DNA of 64,000 nt from Mytilus californianus (GCF_021869535.1 NW_026262734.1:1798001-1862000), one strand, 5' to 3'; numbered from the stretch's first letter, positions 41 to 39,048 are shown. Numbers and translations: made by a program. The notes: generated by a model from the letters alone, not told the origin.

Positions 41-3000
41 TGATTTTCCTGTTTTTTGTTGTAGATCTTCTAACAATTTACATACAGTCTGAATCTGTGT
101 CTTAAAATAATCTGCTGCTTCCTGTAAATTCAAGAAAAAAATGATAATACAAATGTACAGGTTGTAATTATTTTGTACACATATAACAGTTTATAAGCCT
201 GATTTACTAAGGGGCTAACTCATTATGATACAATATTCTTTCAATAGTATTCAAGATAAACAAAAAGATAGTCTTTTAGTTATATTGTACTGTACGGTTG
301 TTATCTGATAGGCATATACATGTACTATCTGTTGATTCTATTGCATAAACACTTAACAAACAATTAAAATCAAATGAACCATAAAACTGTACAGGTAAAG
401 CATTTAGATATAGAGTGAAGACACTTTAACTGTAAAACTGCATTTACCCAGGAAATTGTTATTCATAATATGTAAATCCTTATCCTATAACATTTTCAGA
501 GGTTGAGTTATACATTCTCTTTGGTTCTGTGTTTAATCAAATTTTACTTGTTTAATTTCCCTACCTATGTTGCCATGATGCAGTTTTTTTATATCTTAAA
601 TAAAACCAATAAAAATAAGGGCAAGCTATCTAAGCAACTATACCTACAAAATCCTTTAGAAATACAGCACAATGAGACAAACCTTTTGGACTTGCTGAAT
701 AGCAGCTGCCTCTTTGACAATAGATCCATATTCTTTCTTGATGTCTTGAATTTTCTGTAACATTTTAGCTGGGTTCACCTGTAAACATAGTAAAAAGGTA
801 TAACTATAAACCTTTCATACAAATGTTGAAGATGTTTAATAGAGTCAAGAAAGTCTTGTTGGCACATGCTGCACAATTACTGGTAGTTACTATAAAACTC
901 TCAGTGGATCTTGAAAATTTTTATATGCATAAACAACATGGCTGTCATCCATACAACTTCTATAGTATGAAGCATGAAAAGAACAAAGTTTTAAAATATT
1001 ATATGTGTTTCTACATTGCTTGTACCCAAAAATGAAAAATAATGACACGTCATTCACTCATTGGTTGAAAATCCCCTTATTATACAACAACAACATTTTG
1101 GTGTATGTCTTTAAAATTAATACCCAGAAATCAGTACATTTCTTACCTTATTTTCTTCATTATCTTTATCAAATTCAAACTCAATTTTCCTGGACAAATA
1201 ATTCAGATCAGATTCTGCTTGCTGGAACTGAAATCAAATAAATAAACATCAAAATTACATTAAAACATGTCAAACCCAATCTTCCTTGAAAACTATCCTC
1301 TTAAATCAGATTCTGCTTGCTGGAACTGAAATCAATTGAATAATTTTCACGTATATATACATGTACCTGTTCATTCCAAGAATCAACATGTCCAACTTAT
1401 TTTTTCTGACCAGAAACATTTTTGTTGGGCACATAATCAAAATTTAATCTAAGAAATTGATGTGAAATTCTGAATGCCATATTTTATTGTTGTCAACTTT
1501 CTGGTAATGATTTACATGCTGTAAATAGACAAAGTATAATGCATAGATAACAGTTAAACTTCAAATTTCTTTCTGAAATGATACTGGCTGCTAAAAGCGA
1601 ATTATTATTTCACTATTTCACTTTCCTTAATGATTAAACAAAACAAAATCATACTTTGTACATATCTCGTAGCTAGTGCCCTTTAAATTTTATATATATG
1701 GTAGTTACTCTACGTTTTTAGAATCTCACTTTATCATGAAACAATAATAAAACTTATTTCTAGCAATACACTAACTATTACACTATTAAACAATTATTCA
1801 ACACAAAACCAACAAGTGAAACTGCGAGCTACCATGGCTACAGTTCCCCGATGATACCCCCACAACTGGATAATTTTAATAGTGTAAAAATATGTAAGTG
1901 TTCGGTAAACAGGAAGTTGTTGAGTGATGAATCTGAAAACGCATCACACGGTAAGGCTGACTTATATAAACCCTGAAACCAAATTTTAGAAATCCTTATG
2001 ATGTAGTTCCTGAGAAAGCTGCCACGAAAAATAGTCATGGGACGGATGGACAGACAGACAGAGGTAAAACAGTTTACCCCCACTTTCTTAAAGCTGGGGT
2101 ATAATAAAACTAAAACAGGTTGGGCTCAAGTCAGGAAAAGTGGGGTATTCCCAGTTTTCAGGGACCGTCCCAGTTTTCTGGTGTTAAAAAACCCCAGTTT
2201 ATAGGGACTTCCTTTTCTATTTCAATTCATGGCATGAAATTTACAAAAGCGCATGTTTTAACTGTATCAGTAGTATTTGTAAATACTTTAAGTATCTCAG
2301 GAACAACAAAACATGAATAAGTGAAGCCTTGTTTTTTCTAGAACTCAAAAACATACAAATCTTTTGTTTAGGAATCAGTTGATCAAGCTGCATGCTCCAG
2401 GTGTAACTGATCATAACTGAATTATGTTCACTTCTATTGAAATTTTCTATTCATTGAATTTAAATGCCTAAGTGATTAACTTATCTTTTTGTCTTCTCAT
2501 AATTGATGATCAAGGTATGAATTGGTGAACAAAGGAATTGTTTTGTTGTGAGTTGAGCATCAAATAAGACTTGAAATTAGCTTGATTTTTGAACTTATAA
2601 AAACACTTGCTATCATATAACATTGTTATCACATGTAGAAGGTGCGCTTTTGTAGATTTCATACCATAAATTGACAAGGAAAAAAGAAGTCCCTGTTCAC
2701 TGGGGTTTTTTAACACCAGAAAACTGGGGTGTTCCCTGAAAACAGGGAATACCCCAGTTTTCCTGACTTGAGCCCAACCTGTAAAAGGTTGCGAACGTGA
2801 AAGGGGTGAAACATGAATTGGAGGGAAAGTGATTTTGGGCGAACAGACCCGGATTCTATTAACCATGGGTGCTGAATTAACCAGGTCCCAATCTGACTAG
2901 GTGCCGAATTGGCTATACCGGGTGCCAATTTGACCAGGTGCCGAAGTGACTAGAAAGTTAGATTAGATTAGTTGGTAGGATTTTTTTTTTTTGGTGTGGG

Positions 3001-3147
3001 AATTGATTTGACAGCCCGGGTGTGATGAGTTAAAGATTTGGCTTTCCATTTTCAATTTAGCTTGAAAGCGATACAAATCAAACACAAATGATCAAGAAAT
3101 TAATCAATTTTTACCATTGACTCCAAAATCTCAACATTTTTCTCCAT
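41..3147 (-). CDS. SKA2: Spindle and kinetochore-associated protein 2 (SKA2), 3'-partial. Exons 3147-3115, 1227-1147, 778-683, 121-41; last exon lies outside the window
   Basis: Four phase-0 exons with canonical splice sites translate to MEKNVEILESM|FQQAESDLNYLSRKIEFEFDKDNEENK|VNPAKMLQKIQDIKKEYGSIVKEAAAIQQVQK|EAADYFKTQIQTVCKLLEDLQQKTGKS. This matches recalled human SKA2 ([29 protein letters not shown]...KNPVTLLKELSVIKSRY...EQK). Confidence 0.9.
1812..2104 (-). mobile_element. HINE/pearl-like non-autonomous element
   Basis: acaag start, gacggatggacagacagaca microsatellite, and a terminal cccc...ggggtataa hairpin. Confidence 0.55.
2116..2781. mobile_element. MITE with long imperfect TIRs in SKA2 intron 1
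   Basis: caggttgggctcaagtcagg ... cctgacttgagcccaacctg, with inverted similarity extending ~140 bp. TAAAA direct repeats at 2111-2115 and 2782-2786. Confidence 0.8.
2860..2955. repeat. Short degenerate tandem of ~19-20-bp ggtgccgaattgaccag-like units
   Basis: ggtgctgaattaacca, ggtcccaatctgacta, ggtgccgaattggcta, ggtgccaatttgacca, ggtgccgaagtgacta. Confidence 0.5.
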
Positions 3148-3305
3148 TTTCTTTATTTACTTCCGGTAATTGTTAACTGTTCTGTGATTGGACATCGAGT
3201 TGTTAAACGAGAGTTGATTGGATGTCAAATAAAGGGCGGTCATTACAATCATTAAAAAAAGATGAACATGTCTATGAAGAACATTCGTGCATTTAATCAT
3301 GTCAA
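3148..3305. promoter_or_regulatory. Putative bidirectional SKA2/PRR11 promoter
   Basis: ACTTCCGG ETS-like site at ~3159-3166, ATTGG (inverted CCAAT) at 3187-3191 and 3217-3221, GGGCGG at 3234-3239, all immediately upstream of the SKA2 ATG. A candidate PRR11 non-coding exon-1 donor lies at 3306. Confidence 0.6.
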
Positions 3306-3537
3306 GTATATACTAACTTGACAACCAATTATATATACAAGTAGTTAATAGTATGTTAACTGTGCAGGTCATCTGATAATTTTTTAAACATATCTTGATA
3401 TTAACATGCATGTACAAGTGTCAAGTGAACTTTTTCTGCTATCATTTAATGACTGTATGAAGCTGCCTTTTTTTCTTTCTGGTGTAGACCTGATTTTTCG
3501 GTGTAATATGTGTTTATATATAGACCAATGTTGAGTT

Positions 3538-4070
3538 GTTTTTATGCCCGCCGTTAGGCAAAAGGGGCATTAAGTGTTACCCCTGAACGTTTGTCTTTCC
3601 ATGCGTCCCATTTTTGTTGCCTCATGCAAATATTATGAAACTCATACACAATGCTCAGAACCAAAACTCGCTGACAGTGTTCAAATTTGGGCATTAAGTC
3701 ACTTATCGTTTTAGAGTTATGCCCCTTTCATAACTTGGAAAATTGCAAACTTTTCATTTCCACATGCTCATTTAAGTTTGCCTCATGCAAATTTTATAAA
3801 ACTCATTCACAATGCTGAGAACCAAAACTGCAGACAGAGTTCAAATTTATGCACTGAGTAATTACCTTTCTAGAGTTCTGCCCCTTTATAACTAGTTTCT
3901 GCTCTCTTAAGTTTGCCTCATCCAAATTTTATGAAACTCGTACACATGCCCCTTTTCCATTGTATTTTATAAGCCCCCTCATAATTTAAGATCGGTTCCG
4001 AGATTCATTCTTTAGCTAGAGCATTTCGAGTTATTTCCCTTTAAACACAATCAAAATTTTAATGGCAGAC
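3538..4070 (+). mobile_element. HINE-like element with three internal repeats
   Basis: tttttatgccc...ggggcattaagtgttaccc start, then three copies of ctcatgcaaat..atgaaactcatacacaatgc-like sequence. Confidence 0.55.
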
Positions 4071-4859
4071 ATTCATGACATTGATTGATTTTTGTAATTA
4101 TTTTTGAACATTTTTGAAGCCATCGAGTACAAATACGATTCATGATTGAATCTAATAAGGACATCATCTACTTCATACCTCTACGAATTTAAAATGTAGA
4201 AAATTTAAAAGGAACCAGGCGATTGATTGAGTTATAAATTTACGATGCATGGGATGAACAGCGTAAACAATCCGCTGTTTGTTTATATTTTCATTTTAGA
4301 TTTGACCACTTTAACTATTTGACCAGTCGAGACGACAGAGTGGGTGTGAATTTACAACTGCTTTCTTACTGTTGTTTCAATAGACAAAAAACTATACAGA
4401 ATTAAATAGATAAAAAGATGAATAGCCTTATAAATTTTGTACAGTTATGATTGAAGATAATTCTGGGACATAATATATTGTATGGTAGTCCCATGGTAAT
4501 TTTAGCTTTGATTGGTATAGACATGTCAGGTCCAAAAGGTATTTGGTACGAATCTTTTGTGCAGCTTAAAAGCAATGCATATGCTCCTTGCCATGCAAGT
4601 CTTGACACTTTCACAACACATCCATAGCTATATATAGACAATCAGCCTCAGTGATTGAGTATTAAAATGTAAAACTAGAGTTAATGATGAGGCAGTTGCA
4701 CCATCAAGATTCTATTAGCTGAGTCTAGAAGTGATAATTTTATTACAAAAAGGAATTAAATTGAAAACCTAATATACATATCTTTATTTTTTACCAGTAA
4801 ATATAAAACAATGGTATATTTGATTAAATCCCTATCCATAACAGTGCCTTTATATCTAT

Positions 4860-4975
4860 GTAAAGGGTGCCCTTAACATGTAGTCCTCCATGTAAAGGAT
4901 ACGTTTAAAGTGTAGTCCTCCACTCAAAGGGTGCCCTTAAAGTGTAGTCCACCACGCAAGGTGCCCTCAAAGCAT
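4860..4975. repeat. ~28-bp tandem repeat, ~4 copies
   Basis: Recurring aagggtgcccttaaagtgtagtcctcca. Confidence 0.7.
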
Positions 4976-5910
4976 AGCCAATTGTCCTACGAGTGGCCTC
5001 TATCATCTATGCAAATTTTTATGCCATCAGTTACAATCACACAAGTTCCTGCAAAATATTGCATCACAGTTTGAAAAATTTGACGTTGTAATTAAAAGCT
5101 ATTCTAGTATTGTTGTGTGACGTCAAGAGGTTATTAGGAGACACAGATCTAGGGTCTTTTGGAGACAAAATTCAGCTAAATACCAAAAGTGTAAATATTT
5201 TATTGGTTCTTTCTGCAATGTCATAACAGAAGCATTATGACATAAGTAAGTAAATTTTATTTAAAGCCAAGACGACTTTTTATTTTGTGTATATATAAGC
5301 CATATGTACACAATAAAAAAGAAATCATGAGCTCTGATAAACTCTTTTTAAAAGACTTTCATATAAAAATCATGCAGTTTCATGCATACACGTATTATAC
5401 TAATAAGTAAAAAGGCATGCAAATATATTATATTTATAGACATAGGAAATGAACAGGAAAATGCAAGAATTTGAAAGTCGTCTATTTGGTTTTGTGAATA
5501 CTTGATTTGTGCTTTATGAGTGAAGGACTGAGGTGAAAGACATCAGATCCACTGCTGTCTGTAAAGACATAATCACTGGAATTTCTATTAAAAAATGATT
5601 GGAAAAAAAAAGTATTTACATAAATTTGTATGTTATTACTTGTTCATCATGTTCATAGGCACATTACTTTAGACAAGTTTAATCAGAAATCCATTTTTGG
5701 TCCTAGTAATGTCCTTGTTGTCATGGTTGTAGAATGTGCTTTATTTAGCAACTTTCAGATAAACAGTAAATAAACATTATTATATATTCTGGACATGTAC
5801 TTCATTTTAACTTTGATAGATAGTTGTCTCATTGGCAATCACACCACATCTCTTTATTTTTATATGTACATTTACAGATGAGGAGAATAAAAGAGTAGAG
5901 AAATTTGAAT

Positions 5911-8900
5911 ATGGATTTAAAGAAAAATGAAAAAGATGAAAATAGGTAAGATGAAAAAATACTGATTTTTCAGTAAAATTTAAACTTTTTTCATAAAATA
6001 GGTCCTCCAGCATTTATTACATGAATGAAGTTAGATTAATGATAATTATCAATGAGATAAGAAAAAAATTATGTAATTAAACAAGAAAGGACAGGTTATT
6101 TGAAAACTTCCTTGCTATACACTAAAAATATGGACTTGGAATTGATCAGTCTGTTTAAAAGTAAGGACAAAAAATATACATGTATAAATAGTATTATACA
6201 AAGATTTGGTATAGAAGTTGTACATGTTCCTGTAGAAATCGTACTACGAAGGAGATATCACATCCCAATTTATAATACTATATATAAATTAATTCAGTAA
6301 ACATGGTAAAACCTTTTAGTCATTTAGTAATTTGTGGTAATAAAGTTCCTGACTTTATAATTTACCAGTTATAATTACATACAATTACATTAGAATTTGT
6401 GGTAATAAAGTTCCTGACTTTATAATTTACCAGTTATATTTACATACAATTACATTAGAATTTGTGGTAATAAAGTTCCTGACTTTATAATTTACCAGTT
6501 ATAATTTCATACAATTACATTAGAATTTGTGGTAATAAAGTTCCTGACTTTATAATTTACCAGTTATAATTACATACAATTACATTAGAATTTGTGGTAA
6601 TAAAGTTCCTGACTTTATAATTTACCAGTTACAATTACATACAATTACATTAGAATTTGTGGTAATAAAGTTCCTGACTTTATAATTTACCAGTTATAAA
6701 TACATACAATTACATTAGAATTTGTGGTAATAAAGTTCCTGACTTTATAATTTACCAGTTATAAATACATACAATTACATTCATTGAAATCTATAATGTC
6801 ACTACAGACATGGAAATAGCAATGAAAAAATAAATAAATAAACTTTTTTTTCAGATTTCCTTGCATTCTGTTGCTGAGTGACTGTTTTGGTAGGGAAGGA
6901 GTAGATGTTTCAGGATGGATAAGCATGCTCAAGATATTTCTCCATATAACTGGAGTATTTAACTGGGTTCAACAGTGGATTTTCAGGGTATTTTATGGAT
7001 TAATTTATTGATGTTTATTAAAATTATATAAAAACTGGGCATTTTATGCAGAAATTTTAACATTTTCGAAACTTATTTGTACAGTTTTACATTAATGTTC
7101 AATGAATTCTTCAGTCACATAACTCGTCCTGAACATGTATGAAATATTTGCCACTGGACGTTAAGAAACCAACAATCATCCATCACAACATCAGTCACAT
7201 AAGCTTAATGATGAATAATAACATGCTTATTGAGGTATATTTTTTTATTTCTTAGGATTTTCAGGGAATGAAAAATATTTTGTCAATAGTCTAGCCATTC
7301 TTATCGATGGATACTTTTTTAGCCAGGTAATTGGTTACTGGCTCCTTTTAACTTCATGTTATAATTATATTTCAGAGGAGTAGTAAAAACCCAGAGTTAT
7401 TAGAAACACAGAGAAGACTAAAAAACCTTGAAGAACAGGTCAGGCAGTTAATGCTGGAACAAAAAGTAAGAATAAACTAGATACATTCCTTAGGAAAACA
7501 TAAAATGCTGAAAAAAGTTACAAATTTAAGCATGATTATTATGTTAATTATACCAATGAACAATTTTTTTTCATGAAGTTTATTGTTGAACAAAATATAT
7601 TTTGTCAAAGATCTATTGTTCTTTTAATTAAATATGGGGCTAAATAGTTTAAATACTGTATGGCTAGCATGTCAACACTGAGGTTGTGAGTTTATGCCCC
7701 ACATTTGGCAGGTGTGTTTCAACTCCAAACTGAATAGACTAGGATTTTAAGTTTTCTGCCAAAGGTTGTGGTTTTTTCTCTGGCTTCCTCCACCAATAAA
7801 TACTGATCCCCACGATATAGTCAATTAGCAATAGTGCTGAAAGTGATGTTTAAACACTAACAATCAAACAATCAATTTAACAAAAAAGACTTGCCAATGA
7901 AACTGATGGTAAGTTATACTGTTATGTTCATGACTTACACATGTTACATGTACATTTACTTGTCATTTTTTTTGTGGAAATCTATTTATTCACTAGTCTA
8001 TAATTGTTTTTCTATGCCAGCTAGGGATAAGACCTTGAACAAGGAAATTTTATTTACTGATACATATGCAGGTAACTTAGTTTTGAAAAAGAGTTAACTC
8101 CCATAGTTATCCAGATTCTTTAATTGAGAAACTTGCAGTGTTCCAGCTAGGATTTCAAAAGGGCAGGGAGCCAATCATGAAAAGGGCACTTTAGCATGAT
8201 GATTGATATTTCAAAAAGGGCATGTCAAAAATTGTCTTGTGTTAACTGCAGGGGTTTCAGCTAGGAGTTTTGAGGGGGTTTAGTCACTTTTACGCTAGAT
8301 GAAAATCAACCTTATTTTGGGTAACAGTATTAAAGGGACCATGCAAGGACGTATATTACTAGCTCAGTCTTCCCTAGAACATTTTTGATGCATGGTAGGT
8401 CTAAGGTTAAGTTGCAATGCAGAGCGCAGTGGTGTTTTGTAGAATTATTTTTATTTCATTAGTGAAATGAATTGTGCATGTCAGTTAAAATACTACACTA
8501 GATCTGCAATACAGTCAGGAACAATACCTTACATTTTCTTCAGGGGCCAACCTGGATCCCAAAACTTTTTTCTAAGGGCCCAGTAGAAATACATCAAACG
8601 CAAATTGTCATCTTTTGAGAAATATTGAAATTGAAATGCTGACTGACCGAATTTAATGAGAAAAATTATTACAATGGTCAATTATGAAGTTTAATTAACG
8701 GATTAATGACCCATCCAATGTCGATAAGCGGATTATCTGTAATCACAACTTATTACACCTGTAAATGTTAATTAGCTGAGGGTCATAAACTTGTCATAAA
8801 TATGAAGACAGGTAGAATAATTGTATTTTCATCAAAATATTATGGCAATAAAGGCATAGACTTACGAAAAAAGGCACAGGGTGGTACTCAGTAAAGGGCG

Positions 8901-11900
8901 GGCGGACCGCGCTGTGAAAACGACCTAGCTGGAACACTGACTTATATTTTATTCTCTTCTTGGTTTTCTCTTACCTTTATTGCCCTTATAGAGTTTTATT
9001 GACTGTCTTTAATAGTTGTCCTCATTATTCATAAAAGTACAATTTCATGGACCTTGAAAATCTCATTTGTCTTACATGTGTTTTCAAAATACTGCTTAAT
9101 TGGAAGCCTCCAAGAATATTTTTCACCACTTACTTTCATCTGTGCATAGAAAAGTTCTTGTTAAAAAAGTTTTAACTCTAATTAAGAAAGGAGTAGGACC
9201 GGTAAGGGCCGATTTTGGCCTCAAATTTCAGGTTCATCTGATGACAGATTTTGGACACTTTTTAAACACAAGTGTCTACTTCAGTCGATTCAATAAGTTT
9301 ATGTGAAAGATTTGAACTGGTTTAGTCATTAAAGACACTCAAATTCAAGCTTCAATATGAAAAATCAATCAAATATGAAATAATATGTCACTTTTCAGCT
9401 GGCTTTATGTCAAAAATGAAAGTGGCAGCATGCGTGTTCACTCTCAACCTTTATGTTATGTATTTTCATCAAATACAACTAACATTTAAATATTAAGAAT
9501 GAACACAAATGCGGCCACTTTCATTTAAGACGGAAACTGTCTAAAATTTAACTCAAATGCTAAAATTGTGAAGATTTCAGTAATTTAGCTTGACTTAATG
9601 ATGCTAGTACCCGATATATGTGCATTGTATTGTCAAAAACAGCCCATATTTATGTAACAAAGGTATTCTACTTCCAATAAATAGGTTAAAGTTTACATGT
9701 TAACAATTTTGTAAAACTGCTATATTTTGGGGCCAAAAAGGGGTCTTACTGGACCTACTCCTTTCATGCAACCCCCATACTCAGGAAGGTTAATATGAGT
9801 ATAGAACAATAATAATTAACAATCATTTTCTGTTTCAGAAACTAGCTACAAATTCTGGTAGAAATAATTGTTCAGTATGTACCTGTCCAATGCATGGAAA
9901 TGTGGGAGTGGTCAGTAGTGGAGGGTGTGTCCCACAAGCACCACCTCCCCCACTGCCTCCCCCACCGCCACCACCACCCCTTCCACCAGTGATGTCGTTA
10001 TCAAAGAGAGTATTGGCTGAAAAGAACAACAATACAGTAAAATCAACAGATAAGTCAGTAAGTTACACAGTACAATCAACAGATAAGTCAGTAAGTTACA
10101 CAGTAAAATCAATAGATAAGTCAGTAAGTTACACAGTACAATCAACAGATAAGTCAGTAAGTTACACAGTAAAATCAATAGATAAGTCAGTAAGTTACAC
10201 AGTAAAATCAACAGATAAGTCAGTAAGTTACACAGAACTTACAATCAACAGATAAGTCAGTAAGTTATACAGTAAAATCAATAGATAAGTCAGTAAGTTA
10301 CACAGTAAAATCAACAGATAAGTCAGTAAGTTACACAGAACTTACAATCAACAGATAAGTCAGTAAGTTACACAGTACAATCAACAGATAAGTTACACAG
10401 TAAAATCAGCAGATAAGTCAGTAAGTTGCACAATAAAATCAGCAGATAAGTCAGTAAGTTACACACTAAAATCAGCAGATAGGTCAGTAAGTTACACAGT
10501 ACAATCAACAGATAAGTTACACAGTGAAATCAACAGATAAGTCAGTAAGTTACACAGTGAAATACTATAATTTACAATGCATTTATTCTTGCAAAATTTG
10601 CAATGGGATATATATCTGTATGACAAAAATAAAGACTGGCATCTTAAAACCATTATTTGTATGTAATATTTACCTTAATTACAATCATTATTCTTGTATA
10701 TTTCAAACATCGCAATAATAAATGAATAGAAAAATTTCTGAATTTACAGGTGTTTTTGTTTAAAGTTCATTATACCTCCTAAACCTTACCTTGTAATGTT
10801 TCTCTTCATAAAAATTATAGGTTATTTGATCATTTATTTTAAGGCCAAATAAAAACATGTGTGGTTCCAGTTACATCCTGAAAAAAAATAGGGTTGGTAG
10901 GTTGTCATTTTATTTTATCTTTATTTCTTTTTTTTTTGGATTGTCAAAATCCGGAAAAATATCGTGTGTTTACCGAGTCCAATTCTAGTATTATACATGC
11001 CCCTACTGGAAGTTCACCATTTTCTATATGTTTGGTTGTAAAATAAACAGACATGTTATGTTTTTATTTAATTTTGTTGCATTCTGTTAAGAACTTGTTG
11101 CATTTTTAGCCGTAGTGGATACTTTTAATGGAAATTCATATGACAGAAGTCTGTGATTTTAATTATTGAAATTCACATTCCACAAAATGGGACCGTTCTA
11201 AATATATTTTTCAGAAATGGAAAAAAAGTTCTAGGGTCAGTTGGGTAACTGGAACCACACATATATTTTTATTTGGCCTAATAACAATAACATACACATG
11301 ATAAAGCCATAAAATTTGTCAAAATGAAAAACACATGACCCATTCTAGGTTAGTTTATTGGTATAATATAAAAATGAAAAGATGTGGTATGATTGACAAT
11401 GAGACAACTTTACACTAGAGTTCGAATGACATAGAATTTAGCAACTATAAATTTGCTAAAAGTCCAAGCTTAGCTGTCACATTTTGTAATACATATAATA
11501 ACACTTTTGTATTGATGACGTTTGCTGTCATGCCATGGTTGATGGTTGGACTTATTGGAAACAACATATGCAATTGCAGTTGACATTTTTTGGATATTTC
11601 AAATGATGTAATTTGAACATTAAATGAGTATTGCAGTAGAGTAGTTATAACAGTACTGTATTTGGAGAGCGAATTTGAAGGTCGCAAATATCTAATTTAC
11701 TGGCCTTGCTCCCGATCACCAGTAAAACTACGTTTGTGACAGTCAAATTCACAATTGACCGTTGCAACTCTTCAAAACAGTGCTGTTTTCATGAAGTATA
11801 AGAGCCTGCATAATATTTGAACTTAAGACTTATTATCAAACTTGATTTTTTTGGGGTAATAACCTAAAGAATCAATAAAAATTTCTTTCAGTTTGAAAGA

Positions 11901-14900
11901 TGATAAAATGTGGGTTAATGTAATTTCGTTTAAAATTTGATGTGTTCATATAAGACTAATTTCACCTTCATTTTCTGTAATTCTGTCACACAGTTATAAT
12001 TTTTACTCTTATTGAAGCTGTAGTTAGTGTTGTGATTTCTACGTTATATAATTTAAATGACAAAATTTGTTTCAGAAGAAGAGTCCTTTGAAGTCCTTAG
12101 TGTTAACACCAGCCGACCTTCAGCAGATAAAACTCACCACTCCTAAAGAAAGACATCCTTCAGAAAATGTAAGATATCTTATGAATAACCAGGCTTCCCA
12201 CATAAAACAAATGTTATCTGACTGAACTTTAATACAGCACCCTTTATTTCAATACATGGCAATCACATTCATAACAAAGGTATGATAAATCTGTCTTATA
12301 GCAAGAAGAAATTATAGATAAGCAACTCAGGTGACAAGTGTTTGCCACAATGTTAGTTTTCTTTTACTAAGAAGAGGGCGCCCTTACTTCTTTTCAAAAT
12401 TTTGAATCAATTGTCTGATATTTTATTAAAAGTTCAAGCATTTACTGATAACATGGATAAATTTGCCTCAGTAAAGATTTCATCATTCTTCTTGTATCAA
12501 TTTAAAATTACTTTGAATCTGCTTAACAATGTATAATGGTATTATTCATTTAAATTTAATGTTTCTGACTGCTGCTGCTGCTGTATTCTTTCAGCTATAA
12601 GTCCTTTGAATTTTGCAGTGTTTAATAAATTTAACAGTATTTTTTATTATTTGGGTGATTTGTATAAAAATAAGAAGATGTGGTATGATTGCCAATGAGA
12701 AAACTCTCTACCAGAGACCAAAATGACATAAAAGTTAACAACTATAGGTCACTATACAGCCTTCAATAATGAGCAAAACCCATACCACATGGTAAGCTGT
12801 AAAAGGCTCAGGAATGACAAATGTAAAACAATTCAAACTTGAAAACTAATGGCTTGATTTAAGTTCATAACAATAAAAGAAAACAAATATGATATACAGC
12901 AACAAACGACAACCACTGAATTACAGGCTCCTGACTTAAGACAGGCACATACAGAAAGATTTGGATTACTTTAACACTCTCAAAGTGTTCTAAAATTAAT
13001 TATTATAACTTTTAATATTATTTATGACAAATTTTTCAGAGGAAATTCCTCAAAACACAATTTACGACAAGTGACGAAAAAGTCTTTTTGCTGTTATCAT
13101 GTGACAAAAACAATTATACAGTAATACAGAAAGTACACAACTTGTTATGGTACTAACTGCCAAAACAAACAAAGCACCTACCATAATTTAGATTATAATA
13201 AAAATTACTGATATTTGTCCATGTCTATCTAGACAATGTAACTAACAATATGTAATTACTTTTCAGGGAAAGAGAAATGCCAATGGTTGTATGCAGCCAC
13301 TGATTACAGAAGATGATCTGAGGAATAAATGTCTAAACAAAGTTATACTGACTACGCCAAACAAAGAAAATGTCAAACACAGGTTTATCTCTATCTTTTT
13401 CATGAATTTGCACATAATATAGAAAAAATACAGTTATTTCTAACTTCGAACGTTCACATTTTGGTTTCCATGGAGATTATTTGACTCCAACCTTCACTCA
13501 TGTCATGGTCTATTTACAGTTTAGACAAAATTCCTCAAGAAACACAAAAATGTTTGGGAGCCTGTTTATATTGCAACATTTAAAAAACATTAACGTAAAT
13601 TCAAAATTATTGCGTGCATTTATTATAGCAAATTTTGAAGAAAAGTAAAAAATGCGAGATTTATTATAGCAATTTCATGAAAATCTGCGTACATATATAC
13701 ATGTATCAGAGATCAGAATGCGAGTTCTTATTATTGCGATTATGACCCAGACGCATTATTCACAATAATAAAAACCTCACAATAATATCTGAATTTACAG
13801 TATTCTGAACACTATAAATTCAGAAATTGTCATAACAAATATGTGAGATAAATTATTGCCATTTCAGGAAATGCTGCAAACAAATAATGCTATCAAATGC
13901 AAGTTTATCCTGTCACAATTTTCACGATAATAAAAACATCACAAAAATTTCAGAACTTGTGGTATTAAAGTCATAGAGTAGCTTTTTATAGATAGTTTAA
14001 ATGAGTTCTATTTTATTCAAATAATACTTTTGAAGATGAACAAAAGACATTTGTACCAGAACTTACAAACAAGTTAATACAGATTTGTATATTTATAAAG
14101 TTTAGATAAATTAATTTAAACAAGAGCTAACCAAGAGTTGATTCACACCACATTGATGTTTTTTTATGGACTATGTTAAAATAGAAATAATTTGCTTTTT
14201 ACAACTTCAATTTTTTTAGGTTAGCACAAGAAGTATTGAGTTTTAGGTTAAAGAAAACTGAAATGAAGAGGTAAGACAATTGATATTAATTTGTGCACAA
14301 ACAGCAGAAAACACAGAAATCAAACTATGACAATAGATTCCTTGGTAATGGGAATAGAAATTACAGTACAGAAAAAGATTGTACTGATTTATAATTCATT
14401 TTATTTACACCATAGATGTGTGCCTCTGTTCCTTTATATATGAAATACATATGGCAAGTCCATTGCTGTTAACAGGGGTTCATCCTCAGTGAGTCCATCT
14501 GTTTTTAATCACAATTTTGATTGGATGACATCATAAATTTTATTGGGGTTGAATACATGGTTTACTGATCTGTAAATAAAGAAAGCTACCATTTTGAATT
14601 CCGTAATTTATTGGTTTATGATAATAAACAAACTATCAAGTCTCATCTGAAATCTCCTTTCTGTCAAAGCTTATTTAATTCTTAAGTGTTCATAAAGCTT
14701 AAAAAAAGGACCCAAAATTCAGAAAGGTTTTGTGAAATACAACTAAGTTCTTCTATTCCTTGGGTAGAAAATCCTTAATATTTTGAAAAATTCAAAGTTT
14801 TGTAAACAGTTAATTTATAATTATGACATATCAATGATAATTCATGTCAACATAGAAGTGCTAACTACTTGACTTGTGATACACTCTGGAGACCTCCTCC

Positions 14901-17283
14901 AGCAGCGGCATCGACCCAGGGATTTTAAATAAACTAATTATAGATACCAGGATTTAAATTTTGTTAGCTGGATGCGCGTTTCGTCTACAAAAGACTCATC
15001 AGTGATGCTTGAATCAAAAAAGTTAAAACGGCCAAATATAGTGGGAAGTTGAAGAGCATGGACGTTTATCTATGAAACTGTTAAGGTTCCAAAAGCAAGA
15101 TCATTATTTGGGGGAATTTTCGATTCATGAGAATTTAAGACCAAAATGATGTCTTAAGGTGGATGGGCGGTCTTAATTAAAATCCATAGAATTTTTTAGT
15201 AATTTGTCAAAATGTAGTTTTTATCATGCTTTTTTTCCAAAATATAATTAAAAGTATGGGTAACCAGACTTTTTTTCACACTACAGGTTGTGCAATATTG
15301 TCAGATTTTGTATAGATTATGCATGGAAAATCAATTTTGTGTGATAAAATGAAAACTACACCATAGAATTTTAAGATAAAATGTTAGAAGATATCTCTTG
15401 TAACATGCTTTCAGATAAGAAAAAGAAAAAATGGGATCACCGGACTTGTTTTCTTGCTACATATTAAAATAGGTTAATTCACAACACTTTCTATTATAAA
15501 AACTGCTTTATCTGAGTTATCTCCCTTACTATATGAGTTATCTCCCCATATGTGGCAAAGTTGAAAAAAAATGAATCAAACAAAAATATTGTGTTTTATA
15601 GAAAATACACCCGTAAATATGACAAAACACATAATTTTCTATATTAACATGAAAAGTCTAACACATGAATTACATATTACTCAAAAAATTTGCACATTTC
15701 ATTAAAGATCTAGACCAATTGTAATCTGCTACTTAAAATCCAAGATTTTTATTTTGTATTAGAATGAAGATATCTGTATTTGTGTTTTGAGCTTGTCTTC
15801 ATAAAACTGTCACAAATATCTGTTTACCTAGCTCTGCTACACATTGCTAGATAAACTTAATTTGTGATAATATAATTTCCTGTTTACATAATATCCTAAA
15901 TGTAACACTAAGCTAGGGAATATTCAAAATTCTATATATATATAAGAAAATCATACCATTTATGCAGGTCATGCGTCCATTTCTCTGAACTAGTAAACAT
16001 TATTGTTTAGGTGCCAGCTTAAGCCAACCTCCTGGTACGGCATATTCTCACTGCGTTGAAGACCCATTGGTGGTCTTGGGCTGTTTTATGCTCTTTGGTC
16101 GGGTTGTTGTCTCTTTGACACATTCTCTGTCTCCATTTTCAATTCTAATATAACTTGACAACTTCATTGGAATTATTTTTTTGTTTTTATCATTTTAAAA
16201 GTTTTGCTTAACTATGAAAGGCAAATATCAGTGAATATTATCCCTTGTAGAATATTGATTTCACTTGATTGCTCTTGCACTGTAATACCCTATTTAGGAT
16301 AATGTTCACTAATATTAATGCAATATCATATATTATTGATTAAATGCATTTTATCCTGTAAAATGCCACTTGACATTAAGCAAGCAATAATCAAACAAAA
16401 GGATCAGAACATTAAAAAAAACATAGTTAAGAACTAAATCTACATGTGACTATCAGCAGTGCAGTTTTTCTATACATTATGAATTGCTGTATCTAATCAA
16501 AGGAAAGAATATATAAGTCAAATATATGTTTTACAGAAGTCCAGGAGGAACCCCACTGGTAAACAGAAAGAGAAAGTTGAGAAGAGGGAGTGGTTTAGCG
16601 CCAGTCATGGCAACAGCACTAAGAAAAAAATTCATAGTAAGAATTATTCTATTAAATATGATATAAAATGTAAGGTGAATTATGATTGGATGACGTTGTT
16701 GTCAATTCCATTGTTGAAGGTCAGAGTAATTTGAAACATCAATGTGTAATCATAGGACAAAAAAAAAATCAGTGCTGATCAATTATTTTTTTAGGAGTTG
16801 TGTCTCTTAGAGATGTAAGTACTATAGAAAATTTAATGTAAGGCCTTTCACATGTACAGTTCTTGCCATATATTTATATCAACGGTTATATCAGCAATGT
16901 CTCAGACTTGTTAAAAAATCAGTGCCGTTCAAATATTTTTAAAGTAGTAATGCACTTTGGAAATCTTTAAAATTATATAAAAAATTGCATTGTAAGTGCT
17001 TTCAAGCCTACTTTTCTCTACAAAAATTTATAAAAGATTTAAAGGTTAAAAAAAACAAGTTTTTTTAGTTATTGCCCATGGACAGATAAAATATGCAAAG
17101 CAAGGAACATTGGAACTCTGTTCTATTATATTAATTATTAAATTCTGAAATTGAACAGTATAACTTGACAAATAAGCGAATAATTTTATGTTTCATCTCT
17201 TTCAGACAGTACACAGCAGTCCAAACACATCTGACAGTTCTGTAAATAGTCCTTTGTCAACAGATACAAGTCCTTTTGTTTGA
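5911..17283 (+). CDS. PRR11: Proline-rich protein 11 (PRR11). Exons 5911-5945, 6855-6987 (or -6889), 7256-7326, 7376-7465, 9839-10057, 12076-12168, 13267-13382, 14220-14270, 16537-16636, 17206-17283; 5' exons uncertain
   Basis: Spliced translation gives a coiled-coil (ELLETQRRLKNLEEQVRQLMLEQK), CSVCTCP, a poly-Pro tract, LTPADLQQIKL, PLITEDDLRNKCL and the PRR11 hallmark RSPGGTPL...GSGLAPVMATALRKKF, ending at TGA 17281-17283. Phases are consistent from 7376 onward. Confidence 0.85.
6323..6781. repeat. 65-bp tandem repeat, 7 copies, PRR11 intron
   Basis: gttcctgac recurs at 6345, 6410, 6475, 6540, 6605, 6670 and 6735. Confidence 0.95.
7672..7878 (+). mobile_element. 5'-truncated tRNA-derived SINE
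   Basis: gtcaacactgaggttgtgag...ggcttcctccaccaataaa...aaagtg...aaacac, the same family as 61536-61799. Confidence 0.7.
8136..8939. mobile_element. hAT-like MITE
   Basis: Perfect 16-bp TIR cagtgttccagctagg / cctagctggaacactg; no exact TSD seen. Confidence 0.75.
9186..9765. mobile_element. MITE (possibly Kolobok-type)
   Basis: TIR gaaaggagtaggaccggtaag / cttactggacctactcctttc, with TTAA on the left flank. Confidence 0.7.
10034..10560 (+). repeat. 33-bp tandem repeat spanning a PRR11 exon end and 5' splice site (14 GTAAGT donors)
   Basis: Unit acagtaaaatcaacagataagtca|gtaagttac. Donors at 10058, 10091, 10124, 10157, 10190, 10223, 10260, 10293, 10326, 10363, 10421, 10454, 10487, 10545. Confidence 0.95.
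10843..11278. mobile_element. Kolobok-like MITE
   Basis: ttaa|ggccaaataaaaacatgtgtggttccagttac ... gtaactggaaccacacatatatttttatttggcc|taat. A related element lies at ~43445-43697. Confidence 0.7.
12662..12955 (-). repeat. High-copy interspersed repeat (gttgtctcattggcaatcataccacatct family)
   Basis: Further copies or fragments at ~5820, 11375, 33580, 48180-48620, 52125, 53790, 60050, 61840, 62830-63050. Confidence 0.75.
14690..15060 (+). repeat. High-copy interspersed repeat (gactcatcagtgatgcttgaatcaaaaaagtt family)
   Basis: Inverted copy at ~43845-43985 and a fragment at ~59840-59960. Confidence 0.65.
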
Positions 17284-35209: not shown

Positions 35210-38200
35210 TTATTATTATTATACAGTATTTATAACAGCGCATTATATAATATCAAAAATTACCCTAAGCGCTTTACAACATATTCACACACATATATAA
35301 GCATTAACAATAAAATATGAAAGCCCATGTTATGAGATCCTAAAACAAACATATTTAAAATAAATGGCATATAAAACTATACTATTAAATTTACTGATCA
35401 ACAATAAAATTTATATAAATGGGCATGGTAATATAAAGGAGACATTGAACCCGTACAAAATAAAAATAAATAAAAAATATTTGCCTAAAAATTCAAAAAT
35501 TACAGCGATATAAAATATTTTAAGAACTATGAAAAAGCATGTCTGAATAAATGAGTTTTCAGGTGTTTCTTAAAAGCGTTCACAGAATGGATGTTCCGTA
35601 TATCACTTGGTAAATCATTCCATAGAACGGCTGCTGCTTTGTCGAATCTCCTTTCCCCATATGTTTTAGTTCTCACACGTGGTGTTGTTAAAATCATGGC
35701 ATTTTCAGATCTGAGAGTTCGCATTGGTTTATATATATTAACGAGTTCTTGTAGGTAGACCGGTGCCTCCTCATGCAAAGCCTTGAACACATAGACGAGG
35801 AGTTTATATTGGCATCGATATGTTACGGGGAGCCAATGTAGAGACTTTAGGATTGGCGTTATGTGGTCGTATTTCCTTCTCCTTGTAATGACCCTGGCTG
35901 CTGTGTTTTGAACTCGCTGTAATCTTTGAATAGTAGTTGATGGGAGTCCATACAGCAATGCGTTCCCATAATCCAAACGAGAGGTTACAAGGGAGCATAC
36001 TAATGTTTTGCATGCTTCTTCGGTAATAAATGGACGAATTCGTCCAATGTTTCTTATCTGATGAAAACATGATTTTGAAACAGCGCTAATTTGTTTGTCC
36101 ATTGCCAAAGTTTTCTCAAAATAAATGCCTAGGTTTTTTACGCACTCAGTATCACTGACAATGTTTCCACCAAACTTGAGATGCAAGTCTGAGAGGTTCT
36201 TCACTCGGTTTTTTGGAGCAAACACTAAAAGCTCAGTTTTGTCCTCGTTTAATTTAAGCAGATTCGAGCACATCCACTTGCTGATGTCAGCTACGCAAGC
36301 CTCAAGTCGCTTTGATATATTTGTCCAATTATCAAGTGGTTTTAATACGAGATAAACTTGTGTGTCGTCTGCATAACAGTGATAACACATATTATGTCGT
36401 TTACATATTTCACCAATTGGTCTTGCGAAAATGCAATAAAGTTTTGGTCCCAAGACCGATCCTTGAGGAACACCAAATAGAAGACGAATCTCATCAGAAA
36501 GAACAGAACCAATAGCGATTCGCTGAGTCCTCATCTCGAGATATGACTTCAACCAACTAAGTGCTGTACTGGTTATCCCACAAGAGTATTCCATCCGCTT
36601 TATTAGAATAGGATGATCGATAACATCGAAAGCAGCCGATAGGTCTAGCATGAGTAAAACGGCACAACAGTCGTTATCAAGTGCAACAGTGATGTCATGA
36701 TGCACACGAAGTAATGCTGTCTCGGTCGAATGACACGCACGATAGGCTGATTGTACATTGTCGTGAAGAGAGTTTGACGTATGATGGTTTTCAAGGCGAG
36801 TCTCGACGACTTTTTCGACCACTTTGGATACGAACGGAAGATTAGAGACTGGTCGATAATTTTTCAATATCTCTTTGTCTAGATTAACCTTTTTCAAGAG
36901 TGGTCGGACAACTGCCTCCTTGAAAGATGATGGTACACAACACTGTTCCAGTGACAAGTTCACTATCTTGGTGATGACGGTAGCTAAACTGTTTAGACAC
37001 GGTTTTAATATATTTGTCGGAAGAGGATCTAATTCGCATGATTTGGTTGGAGCTTTCAAAATAATTTTACGTACTTCCTCTACAGATGCTGGTGTAAAGA
37101 AGGTGAGTGGTTGGCCTTTGAATTTTAAATCGTATTTGAATTCTTCATTATCATAGGCAGACGATTCATTCACTAAACATAGATTGTTCCTTATTGTTTC
37201 GATTTTTCCAAGGAAAAAATTGCCGAATCTATTTGATAGTTCAATTTCACTGTGGTGTGATGGCAAAATCACCTGGTTTGTGTTTCCCATTAGGCCATTT
37301 GTGAGCTTTAGCAGTTTCTTTTGATCGTGTCCAACTTCAGAAATTTTATTTGAATAATAGTCCGTCTTGCATTTGAAGAGCAGTTTACTTGTTCTGGAAC
37401 AATGTTCTTTATAAATCTGTTTATGAACTTCAAGCTTTGTTTTTCGCATTTGTCGCTCAGCTTTGCGGCGTTCTCGCTTTGCAACACGCAACTCATCAGT
37501 GTACCACTCTGTGTTTGGTCGCTGAGTGATCACTTTTGATTGTTCTGGAGCATGCCTGTCGAGGAGAGTTCGAAGCACTGAGTCGTACGAAGCAACACAA
37601 TGTTCAACCGAAGGATTTTGCTCATTTAGGAGAAGAGAATTGTTTATATCCTTCTCGAAATTTTCAATGTTTATTTCTTTGAACTTCCGAAAACTCACAG
37701 ACTTTCTTTGTTTTGGTGGTTTCGTGATATTAAGTTCACAAAGCACTGCGAAATGATCTAGCGAGGAAATTCCTTTGTCATCACAGATATGCAGATCCTC
37801 AATTGACGGTACTCTAGCAAGAATGGAACTATTCTCCCTACATAGGATAACGTCGAGTGTGTGTCCACGGATATGCGTAGCGCCAACAACGTGTTGTACG
37901 AGACCATGGTCGCTAATTGTTTCTTCAAATTTACGGGTGTCACAATTATTCTTATCATCGAGATGGAAATTTAAGTCTCCTGTCAGAATGATTTCTTCGG
38001 GAATTTTGACAGTGTAGTCAAGGAAATCTGACCACTCCTCAAAAAATGTCGAATTCTTTAGTTGATTTTTCCGAGACGGAGGAGGACGATAGATCACGTA
38101 TAGGCGAAATTGATGATTTTGTGCATTTACACTGCATTCAAGAAGTTCAAAGTGTGTGAATTTCTTCTTTGTTTGCGGAATACGTTTAATAATTAAGTTT

Positions 38201-39048
38201 GATTTATGTACGATGGCAACACCTCCGCCTTTTCGATCCGATCTTGCAGCATGCTGTACATCGTATCCGTTTGGTAGAAGCTCAGACAGAACACATTTGT
38301 CAACGGCAGAACCAAGCCATGTTTCAGTGAGCGCAAGCATGTCAGTATTACTCGAAGTCAGATAATCACTGATAGAAAGCGATTTGTTCTTTATCGATCT
38401 AACATTTAACGTTGTTAGCGACAATTGTTTGCACATGGTAGACACAGATGATCTCTGAATTCGGGACAAATTGCATTGGTTTTGAACATTAACCGTCTTC
38501 GATAACGGTCGTGGACGTAATGTAACAGTTGAAATAGTGTTCACTTGATGGTCATTTATTGCTGATATGTTACAGTCAGCCGATATATCGATCAAATTGC
38601 TTCTGTTTATGACTCGATTATTACCATGTATGATGTCTCTATTAGGGGTTAAGATTGTGTTTATTAATCGAAACACTTTTTTGCCAGCTTTAGTTCCGCG
38701 TCTTGTTCGTTTGGAAGCATTCACGGCGAACGTACTGTATTGTAAACTACCTGTATGTGGTTTAAATTTAGTCAAGGATATAAATAGCCTTCTGAGTTGT
38801 GAATTCATGGTTGATTTAACTCGATAGAAAAGTAAACACAAATTTTGTGCACATCTGTTTTGATTAAAATGTCGAATAAAATGCAACTCCTTTAGCTCTT
38901 ATGGATAAAGCCATGTGTTAGAAATGTCCTCCTCAAGTATGAAGTCTAACAGTATCCTAAAAGTCATTAAACAAGCAAAATATTCACCTACTCAGTGGGA
39001 GCTGCCTCTCAGCGCTAACCAGCTGTCAATGCATCATGCTAATCTATA
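35210..39048 (-). mobile_element. 5'-truncated L2/CR1-type LINE with intact ORF2 and (TAA)n 3' tail
   Basis: (TAT)n tail on + from 35210 and a ~320-bp 3'UTR. The host repeat unit agacaataa^cttgtg is split at 35209 and resumes at 39049, with no clear TSD. Confidence 0.9.
35527..38886 (-). CDS. LINE ORF2 (APE endonuclease + reverse transcriptase), L2/CR1 group
   Basis: 1119-aa open frame. APE motifs: [46 protein letters not shown] motifs: [39 protein letters not shown]. Confidence 0.97.

Follow-up and report, generated by a model that had tools for sequence, protein, structure and literature searches.

Within a window of 64,000 nucleotides of Mytilus californianus DNA, the orthologs of SKA2, on the minus strand, and of PRR11, on the plus strand, lie next to each other in divergent orientation, a pairing that, by parsimony, probably predates the divergence of molluscs and vertebrates. 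We consider it quite likely that this is an ancient orthologous pair held together by a shared CCAAT core from which both genes would be fired. PRR11 has been studied almost entirely in human tumors, and its pairing with SKA2 has been regarded as peculiar to human or to mammals. The sequence-only reading of this DNA knew of no report of the pair outside vertebrates; a literature search likewise recovered no paper on the linkage, but the lophotrochozoan proteins from Lingula, Argopecten and Mytilus are already named PRR11 or PRR11-like by NCBI.

The window is molluscan and, specifically, mytilid, being colinear with Mytilus edulis chromosome OY782961.1 at 70-90% nucleotide identity, so the mollusc conjectured in the earlier reading is confirmed. 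Both genes were found where that reading had placed them. Of the limits it gave, 41 corresponds to the border of SKA2 exon 4 and 17283 to the PRR11 stop codon, but SKA2 does not end at 41. Searches with the window's own exons were run with single exons taken one by one and were complemented with database proteins of related species. An Rfam scan of the whole window found nothing.

The minus-strand gene is the SKA2 ortholog. Its first coding exon (3147-3115, with the ATG at 3147) encodes 11 aa, is followed by a GTAAAA donor, and is identical in M. edulis. Exon 2 (1227-1145; FQQAESDL…), which is kept in all relatives, matches positions 10-36 of the Pfam SKA2 model (E 5.6e-4, 20.1 bits), and exon 3 (776-682) matches positions 38-69 (E 0.022, 15.0 bits) and was detected in the relatives by tblastn with E values of 1e-9 to 1e-16. 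Exon 4 (120-40) is followed by a GTAAGT donor, and the gene runs on past the window start for another ~10 kb, to about C154:1787958, with four more exons and a DUF3161 tail. In the exon-by-exon scan, the SKA2 (PF16740) matches on exons 2 and 3 are colinear; each alone falls below the 30.1-bit whole-protein cut-off, and their rough sum is 35 bits. In a genome-wide six-frame scan with the same model, the true exon ranked only sixth, amid chance-level matches, so that exon-level profile scoring is too weak to identify the gene by itself. A single RNA contig of 1,672 nt (run X2, record 17) joins exons 2, 3 and 4 exactly at the predicted borders, and stranded RNA reads (X21) in the SKA2 region cover these exons only, on the expected strand. 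Exons 1-4 show 97-100% identity to their M. edulis counterparts, and the protein encoded by the M. edulis gene is recorded with PF16740. The 11-aa exon 1 and the phase-0 border before FQKAxSDL are identical in five lophotrochozoans and the swan (the relatives compared being M. edulis, Argopecten, Patella, Lingula and the swan), and the DUF3161 tail is common to the SKA2 proteins of this mussel and the swan, a vertebrate-like architecture.

The plus-strand gene is the PRR11 ortholog. Mapping of the M. edulis protein annotated as 'proline-rich protein 11-like' delineated nine coding exons, from the ATG at 5911 to the stop codon at 17281-17283, with AG/GT at all borders. Exon 1 (5911-5945) corresponds to the beginning of the M. 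edulis CDS; exon 2 (6855-6987) is supported by splice sites and a 98% tblastn match to P0004; and exon 4 (9839-10057), which encodes the Cys cluster and the poly-proline tract, uses as its donor the first GTAAGT of a 33-bp tandem array. Exon 3 (7376-7465), containing the coiled-coil segment, exons 5 (12076-12168), 6 (13267-13382) and 7 (14220-14270), and the last coding exon, 9 (17206-17283), were placed by protein mapping and splice sites. Exon 8 (16537-16636) encodes the SPGGTP…LRKKF motif, and its borders are the same from mussel to bird. In all seven species compared (M. californianus, M. edulis, Argopecten, Patella, Lingula, Umbra and Cygnus), the acceptor is found 1 nt ahead of the Ser codon and the donor 3 nt past the codon for Phe.

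When exon 8 was compared with 1.84 billion representatives, the named matches were all of the PRR11 type (Mytilus, Argopecten, Lingula and Sphenodon), and the nearest clusters in the protein atlas are PRR11. The domain tags PF28521 (PRR11_1st) and PF28520 (PRR11_2nd) are on record for vertebrate members only; a Pfam scan of the PRR11 exons, with a model set that did not contain these two families, returned only low-complexity matches, and swan PRR11 itself matched no model of this set. A word-indexed homolog search with the invertebrate PRR11 profile yielded few matches and no new invertebrate phyla, and missed two of its own members, a poor performance explained by the dominance of poly-proline words.

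The sequence-only reading described the two genes as diverging from a short shared interval. This description is only partly right: a distance of 2,763 bp, with repeats inserted, separates the start codons, and only the ~300 bp beside SKA2 are conserved. Over the candidate promoter core (3148..3400), the two Mytilus species show 90% identity. On the SKA2 strand, the core contains two CCAAT boxes, both reading CCAATCA (ATTGG at 3187-3191 and 3217-3221), that are conserved in M. edulis and have counterparts in Lingula, Patella, Argopecten and the swan. In Mytilus, Patella and Lingula alike, a pair of same-strand CCAAT boxes is present within ~110 nt of the ATG of SKA2, for which the background expectation is ~1% per locus; in Mytilus and Lingula the two boxes are exactly 30 bp apart. 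In the mussel core, a GC box (3234-3239) comes next and then, on the PRR11 side, a conserved stretch of ~150 bp, which may represent a non-coding first exon of PRR11. A conserved short ORF at 3262-3320 was rejected as a coding exon because all differences between the two Mytilus species within it are non-synonymous. The rest of the interval (3401..5877) consists largely of high-copy repeats (3560-3960, 4600-5200 and 5819-5865), with a depth (X18) of 10^3-10^5 compared to a baseline of ~36; the last of these, 47 bp long, abuts the PRR11 ATG exon. Conservation between the Mytilus species upstream of the PRR11 ATG begins only 48 bp before it, at the sequence tttacag (5871-5877), with a possible acceptor at 5876-5877.

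The arrangement of these elements suggests that one shared core of the NF-Y type, located beside SKA2 exon 1, would fire both genes and thereby provide for coordinated G2/M expression, as for the human pair; the two genes would have been kept together because both depend on this core. Insertion of repeats would have pushed the mussel PRR11 start codon 2.8 kb away, and the likeliest layout would then be a short non-coding PRR11 first exon that lies within the conserved core and is joined by splicing to the acceptor at 5877. Control of the invertebrate pair by NF-Y is predicted from the motifs.

As the sequence-only reading had stated, the human PRR11-SKA2 pair is a bidirectional transcription unit driven by NF-Y through CCAAT boxes, and it is repressed by p53 (PMC5372550, PMC7833434). 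The mussel locus has the same two orthologs in the same divergent orientation, with CCAAT boxes between them, and the order of features in the mussel PRR11 is that of the human protein: coiled coil, Cys cluster, poly-proline, and the C-terminal SPGGTP…RRKF exon. Unlike the human pair, the mussel genes have transposon insertions between start codons 2.8 kb apart, so that the locus is at most a candidate for a classic pair of <1 kb, and there is no CpG island. Whereas human SKA2 is a protein of 121 aa, the mussel SKA2 is a long form with the DUF3161 tail; the mussel PRR11 lacks the basic, NLS-like N-terminus of its human counterpart. In the CCAAT-box promoters of G2/M genes, such as cyclin B and CDC25C, NF-Y acts with CHR/DREAM-MMB (PMC4176359). 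The mussel core resembles these promoters in having two same-strand CCAAT boxes ~30 bp apart near the start site and in being TATA-less, and in Argopecten the boxes are followed by a CHR-like TTTGAA. In contrast to the cyclin B and CDC25C promoters, the Mytilus core has no canonical CHR. No canonical E2F element was found in it either.

Divergent SKA2 and PRR11 genes are annotated in five genomes, those of M. edulis, Argopecten irradians, Patella caerulea, Lingula anatina and, as a bird control, Cygnus olor. The sample comprises bivalves of two orders, one gastropod, one brachiopod and one bird. The four lophotrochozoan loci have the same exon structure, orientation and SKA2+DUF3161 architecture as that in the window, although the Lingula PRR11 model, unlike the window gene, is truncated at the N-terminus. 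The gap between the start codons or CDS starts ranges from 142 bp in Argopecten through ~1.4 kb in Patella and 1.7 kb in M. edulis to the 2,763 bp of the window, and the genes flanking the pair differ among the lineages examined (RING, BTB, FYVE/SARA, DnaJ and SMG8 genes). In the teleost control (Umbra), no SKA2 was detected within 10 kb upstream of PRR11. Exon-level PRR11 matches were obtained on seven ENA/JGI contigs, of which L020-L024 are uninformative for synteny; the two others, eukaryotic contigs L016 and L017, carry other genes upstream of the PRR11-like gene, so the pairing is not universal. The presence of the same divergent pair in molluscs, a brachiopod, a bird and human places the linkage, by parsimony, at or before the protostome-deuterostome ancestor, which agrees with the bilaterian age proposed in the sequence-only reading.

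It is extremely improbable that the plus-strand gene is not PRR11 but belongs to the mitochondrial fission regulator (MTFR) family, such that the likeness to the human pair would be superficial. The C-terminal RSPGGTP…ALKKKF motif is common to MTFR2, and the Mito_fiss_reg model (PF05308) gave a match of only 15 bits to the window gene, in the poly-proline tract, and none to P0004. Pairwise BLASTP produced a near-tie, 35 bits with swan PRR11 against 33 bits with alligator MTFR2; it cannot separate the two families, so that profile-profile comparison and exon structure are needed. In hhalign comparisons, the lophotrochozoan PRR11-like profile aligned with vertebrate PRR11 over nearly its full length (224 columns, probability 99.9%, E 1.3e-34), but with MTFR2 over 56 C-terminal columns only (E 2e-14); a search with an invertebrate-only profile retrieved fish PRR11 with an E value of 3.7e-29 (81% coverage, 120 bits) and MTFR2 with 1.6e-8 or weaker (<=52 bits). 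Moreover, the exon-8 donor occupies the position found in PRR11 and not that in the MTFR-like gene of this mussel, a separate locus with a Mito_fiss_reg N-terminal region that was identified by an above-cut-off match on contig C1 in a genome-wide PF05308 scan. Synteny with SKA2 also favors PRR11. Domain, profile and exon-border evidence thus upholds both orthologies assumed in the sequence-only reading. An independent origin of the juxtaposition in lophotrochozoans and vertebrates appears very unlikely as well: although one teleost and two eukaryotic contigs (L016 and L017) did not show the pair, and intermediate phyla lie outside the sample, the same genes, the same orientation and same-strand CCAAT boxes recur in six lineages, and all three features would have to converge.

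Much of the ancestral linkage survives in lophotrochozoan and vertebrate genomes, and the pair might have been preserved by slow, neutral genome rearrangement rather than because selection acts on a shared regulatory core. We consider this improbable, given that the flanking genes change in every lineage examined, whereas the pair, its orientation and the CCAAT boxes persist. Somewhat unlikely is the possibility that the two genes are true orthologous neighbors whose promoter is no longer shared in Mytilus; the CCAAT core would then serve SKA2 only, and PRR11 would start just upstream of its ATG exon, near 5.9 kb. The repeat-containing 2,763 bp between the start codons and the 1.7 kb between the CDS starts in M. 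edulis are compatible with such a separation, as are the position of the PRR11 ATG exon beside a repeat and the lack of RNA reads at 3201-3400 in the portion of run X21 that was searched (6% of the run, at low depth). However, the onset of conservation 48 bp before the PRR11 ATG coincides with a good acceptor, which suggests an internal exon there; conservation of 90% extends for ~150 bp past the CCAAT and GC boxes in the direction of PRR11; and the start codons in Argopecten are separated by only 142 bp. A shared core that fires both genes is the reading we favor.

That molluscs, a brachiopod and a bird all have the pair, with same-strand CCAAT boxes, points to a link kept for more than half a billion years amid reshuffled surroundings, a persistence that argues for a regulatory or functional dependency of PRR11 with the kinetochore Ska complex. 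More tentatively, and with slightly less than even confidence, SKA2-PRR11 can be viewed as a co-regulated mitotic unit of bilaterian age, selectively kept around a double-CCAAT core. If so, PRR11, which is known almost exclusively from human cancer, would have an ancestral function linked with the Ska complex or with mitosis. The locus adds to the well-documented examples of bidirectional-promoter microsynteny of ancient origin and does not constitute a new type of system, and mussel, scallop and oyster embryos would provide tractable invertebrate systems for the PRR11-Ska dependency. The view of an ancient mitotic unit further implies a common ancestor of PRR11 and MTFR with a poly-Pro and RSPGGTP…KKF module. 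Although the window gene lacks the Mito_fiss_reg N-terminal region of MTFR1 and MTFR2 (PF05308) and differs from them in the donor after the motif, in all of these genes a poly-proline tract is followed by the RSPGGTP…ALK(K/R)KF motif, and the acceptor of the motif exon is at the same position and in the same phase.

The window (C154:1798001-1862000) is colinear with chromosome OY782961.1 of Mytilus edulis, both across the individual exons and through several non-coding blocks, at 70-91% nucleotide identity, which places its source in a mytilid mussel other than M. edulis; the assembly it comes from comprises 1.65 Gb in 175 contigs, with a G+C content of about 32% and no Ns. On the minus strand, four coding exons of SKA2 were delineated, each scanned individually against Pfam. 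Reading along the strand, exon 1 (3147-3115) encodes the 11 residues MEKNVEILESM and is followed by GTAAAA; exon 2 (1227-1145) matches Pfam SKA2 positions 10-36 (E 5.6e-4, 20.1 bits); exon 3 (776-682), colinear with exon 2, matches positions 38-69 (E 0.022, 15.0 bits); and exon 4 (120-40) is directly followed by GTAAGT. An RNA contig of 1,672 nt (run X2) joins 1228-1145, 776-682 and 120-40 and continues for 1.4 kb beyond the window. Stranded RNA reads (run X21) at SKA2 are confined to these exons and to 3001-3200, with first mates mapping to the plus strand, the pattern that a minus-strand RNA should give. Further exons, homologous to the C-terminal exons of the scallop Argopecten irradians, were found before the window start, at 9171-9043, 7350-7231 and 5827-5783 of the local stretch L010, and at 4032-3958 of L019 (about 1787958 on contig C154), the latter coinciding with a weak DUF3161 match; altogether, they occupy C154:1787958-1797171. 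The gene thus extends over about 13 kb, and position 41, where the sequence-only reading had placed its limit, is a genuine exon border but not the end of SKA2. Intron 1 contains an inverted SINE-like pair (2007-2201, plus strand; 2513-2896, minus strand) and a decoy acceptor: a local duplication of about 100 bp (1307-1333 compared with 1207-1235) repeats the exon 2 acceptor and the first eight codons, FQQAESDL, followed by a stop.

Over exons 1-4, identity to the M. edulis gene amounts to 97-100%, and the product of that gene is recorded as carrying PF16740 and PF11362. Argopecten, the limpet Patella caerulea, the brachiopod Lingula anatina and the swan Cygnus olor share the 11-residue exon 1 (ME…LE.M, then gt) and, ahead of FQKA(E/D)SDL, the phase-0 border. 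The colinear Pfam matches and the gene structure in common with the bird uphold the original assignment of this gene as SKA2. The long form of SKA2 is annotated in the scallop, limpet, brachiopod and swan, so that the short mammalian SKA2 may be derived. The swan product (277 aa) also carries DUF3161, albeit as a weak match; accordingly, by sequence comparison, SKA2 with the DUF3161 tail seems to be the ancestral form. In sequence, the C-terminal DUF3161 domain of the mussel protein is similar to the beginning of the microtubule-binding domain of SKA1, and Patella SKA2 yields a weak SKA1 match; Ska1, Ska2 and Ska3 have been argued to be homologous along their lengths (PMC5439489).

On the plus strand, where searches used single exons or database proteins of relatives as queries, tblastn with the M. 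edulis PRR11-like protein (P0004) delineated nine coding exons of PRR11: 5911-5945, 6855-6987, 7376-7465, 9839-10057, 12076-12168, 13267-13382, 14220-14270, 16537-16636 and 17206-17283. These sum to 915 nt, with AG/GT at every border and consistent phases. A 33-bp tandem array of 16 copies (10034-10563), with GTAAGT in every unit, begins at the exon 4 donor; judging from the M. edulis protein, splicing uses the first donor of the array, so that the exon ends at 10057. The intron after the first coding exon holds a 65-bp tandem repeat (6324-6781; seven copies, 97% identity).

The exon 8 region, a stop-free stretch of 49 residues, had 23 matches among 1.84 billion representative sequences; those with names are the proline-rich protein 11-like entries from M. 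edulis (P0004) and A. irradians (P0013), proline-rich protein 11 from L. anatina (P0012) and Sphenodon PRR11. A second mussel locus has the same C-terminal motif, RSPGGTP…ALKKKF, as this gene: C1:122764026 (5016-5198 of stretch L009), which is assigned to an MTFR-like gene because a Mito_fiss_reg match above the cut-off lies 4.6 kb upstream (C1:122759329-122759496). Membership of the window gene in the MTFR family was weighed against PRR11. Pairwise BLASTP did not separate the two: the scores were near-equal, at 35 bits (266 residues) for swan PRR11 and 33 bits (101 residues) for alligator MTFR2. In profile-profile comparison, four lophotrochozoan proteins aligned with seven vertebrate PRR11 proteins over 224 columns (probability 99.9%, E 1.3e-34); this span starts at the N-terminal Trp-Cys helix, takes in the coiled coil, the poly-proline and the D-L repeats, and ends at the C-terminus. 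The alignment with MTFR2, by contrast, covered only the last 56 columns (E 2e-14), the same pattern as between vertebrate PRR11 and MTFR2. With an invertebrate-only profile, a fish PRR11 came up at 3.7e-29 (81% coverage), with MTFR2 behind at 1.6e-8. The exon 8 borders, an acceptor 1 nt before a Ser codon and a donor 3 nt after a Phe codon, are identical in the window, M. edulis, Argopecten, Patella, Lingula, the teleost Umbra pygmaea and Cygnus; the MTFR-like exon has only the acceptor in common with them. Judged by the profile comparisons and the exon 8 borders, the plus-strand gene is the PRR11 orthologue, as initially proposed. The presence of the motif in the MTFR-like gene, preceded there by an intron of the same phase, suggests an old C-terminal module common to PRR11 and MTFR.

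To survey the pair, proteins of relatives were located in their own genomes. Divergent SKA2 (-) and PRR11 (+) neighbours, noted earlier in the window, were also found in M. edulis (1.7 kb between coding starts), Argopecten (142 bp), Patella (1.4 kb), Lingula and Cygnus, in the last followed by SMG8 and a GDPD gene. The annotated Lingula PRR11 (XP_013412163.1, 228 aa) is short at the N-terminus; an exon that corresponds to the coiled-coil region of the scallop protein is located at L014 9380-9487, 0.5 kb ahead of the annotated start. The outer neighbours vary by lineage (RING finger genes, BTB, FYVE/SARA, DnaJ, SMG8), and the pair alone is conserved. Downstream of PRR11, the two Mytilus species and Argopecten carry a RING-finger gene, previously read as RNF215 (about 24.7-33.4 kb in the window, L011 20848-26335 and L012 26120-26616), which is absent from this position in Patella, Lingula and the bird. 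SKA2 was not found within 10 kb upstream of PRR11 in Umbra, with exon queries that do recover swan SKA2. It is also absent beside the PRR11-like gene in two eukaryotic contigs, L016 and L017, where the upstream neighbours are an RPL23A-like ribosomal-protein gene and an acyl-CoA dehydrogenase gene; in L017, MED13 is nearby. Exon-level PRR11 matches on five more contigs (L020-L024) added nothing on synteny.

The shared interval, first described as short, is so in Argopecten but not in the window, where 2,763 bp separate the two start codons. Much of that distance is taken up by high-copy repeats, located around 3560-3960, 4600-5200 and 5819-5865 (X18 contig depth 10^3-10^5 compared with about 36). 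A 300-bp core, from SKA2 exon 1 to about 3400, is 90% identical to M. edulis, equal to the coding exons; alignable non-coding sequence outside the core is 69-78% identical. The core contains a GC box at 3234 and, on the SKA2 strand, two CCAAT boxes (ATTGG at 3187 and 3217) that both read CCAATCA and lie 30 bp apart. The pair recurs in Lingula with identical 30-bp spacing, at 30 and 60 nt from the SKA2 ATG of that species; in Patella, two boxes stand 53 and 106 nt from the ATG; Argopecten has one box and a one-mismatch copy, then TTTGAA; and the swan has four. Two same-strand CCAAT boxes within 110 nt occur at about 1% of positions in these loci, and chance appearance of the double box in three independent lineages would be very unlikely. 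Beyond the boxes, towards PRR11, conservation extends for about 150 bp, including GTATGT near 3354, and similarity between the two mussels upstream of the PRR11 ATG starts at 5863, by a good acceptor, tttacag (5871-5877); we infer a putative non-coding first exon of PRR11 within the core.

In human, PRR11 and SKA2 form a classic bidirectional unit of the NF-Y/CCAAT type (PMC5372550). The mussel pair resembles it in gene content, orientation and CCAAT boxes, but differs in interval length, transposon load and the long form of SKA2, and mussel PRR11, unlike the human protein, has no basic N-terminus. NF-Y control and G2/M co-expression of the pair might likewise operate in invertebrates. No paper addressing PRR11 microsynteny, the SKA2-PRR11 linkage in non-vertebrates, DUF3161 or homology between PRR11 and MTFR came up in a full-text literature search. 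The linkage thus appears as unreported as was presumed, although the invertebrate proteins are already labelled PRR11 or PRR11-like by NCBI. Elsewhere in the window, an intact 1,123-aa ORF (35530-38898, minus strand) has the appearance of a LINE-type endonuclease/reverse transcriptase.
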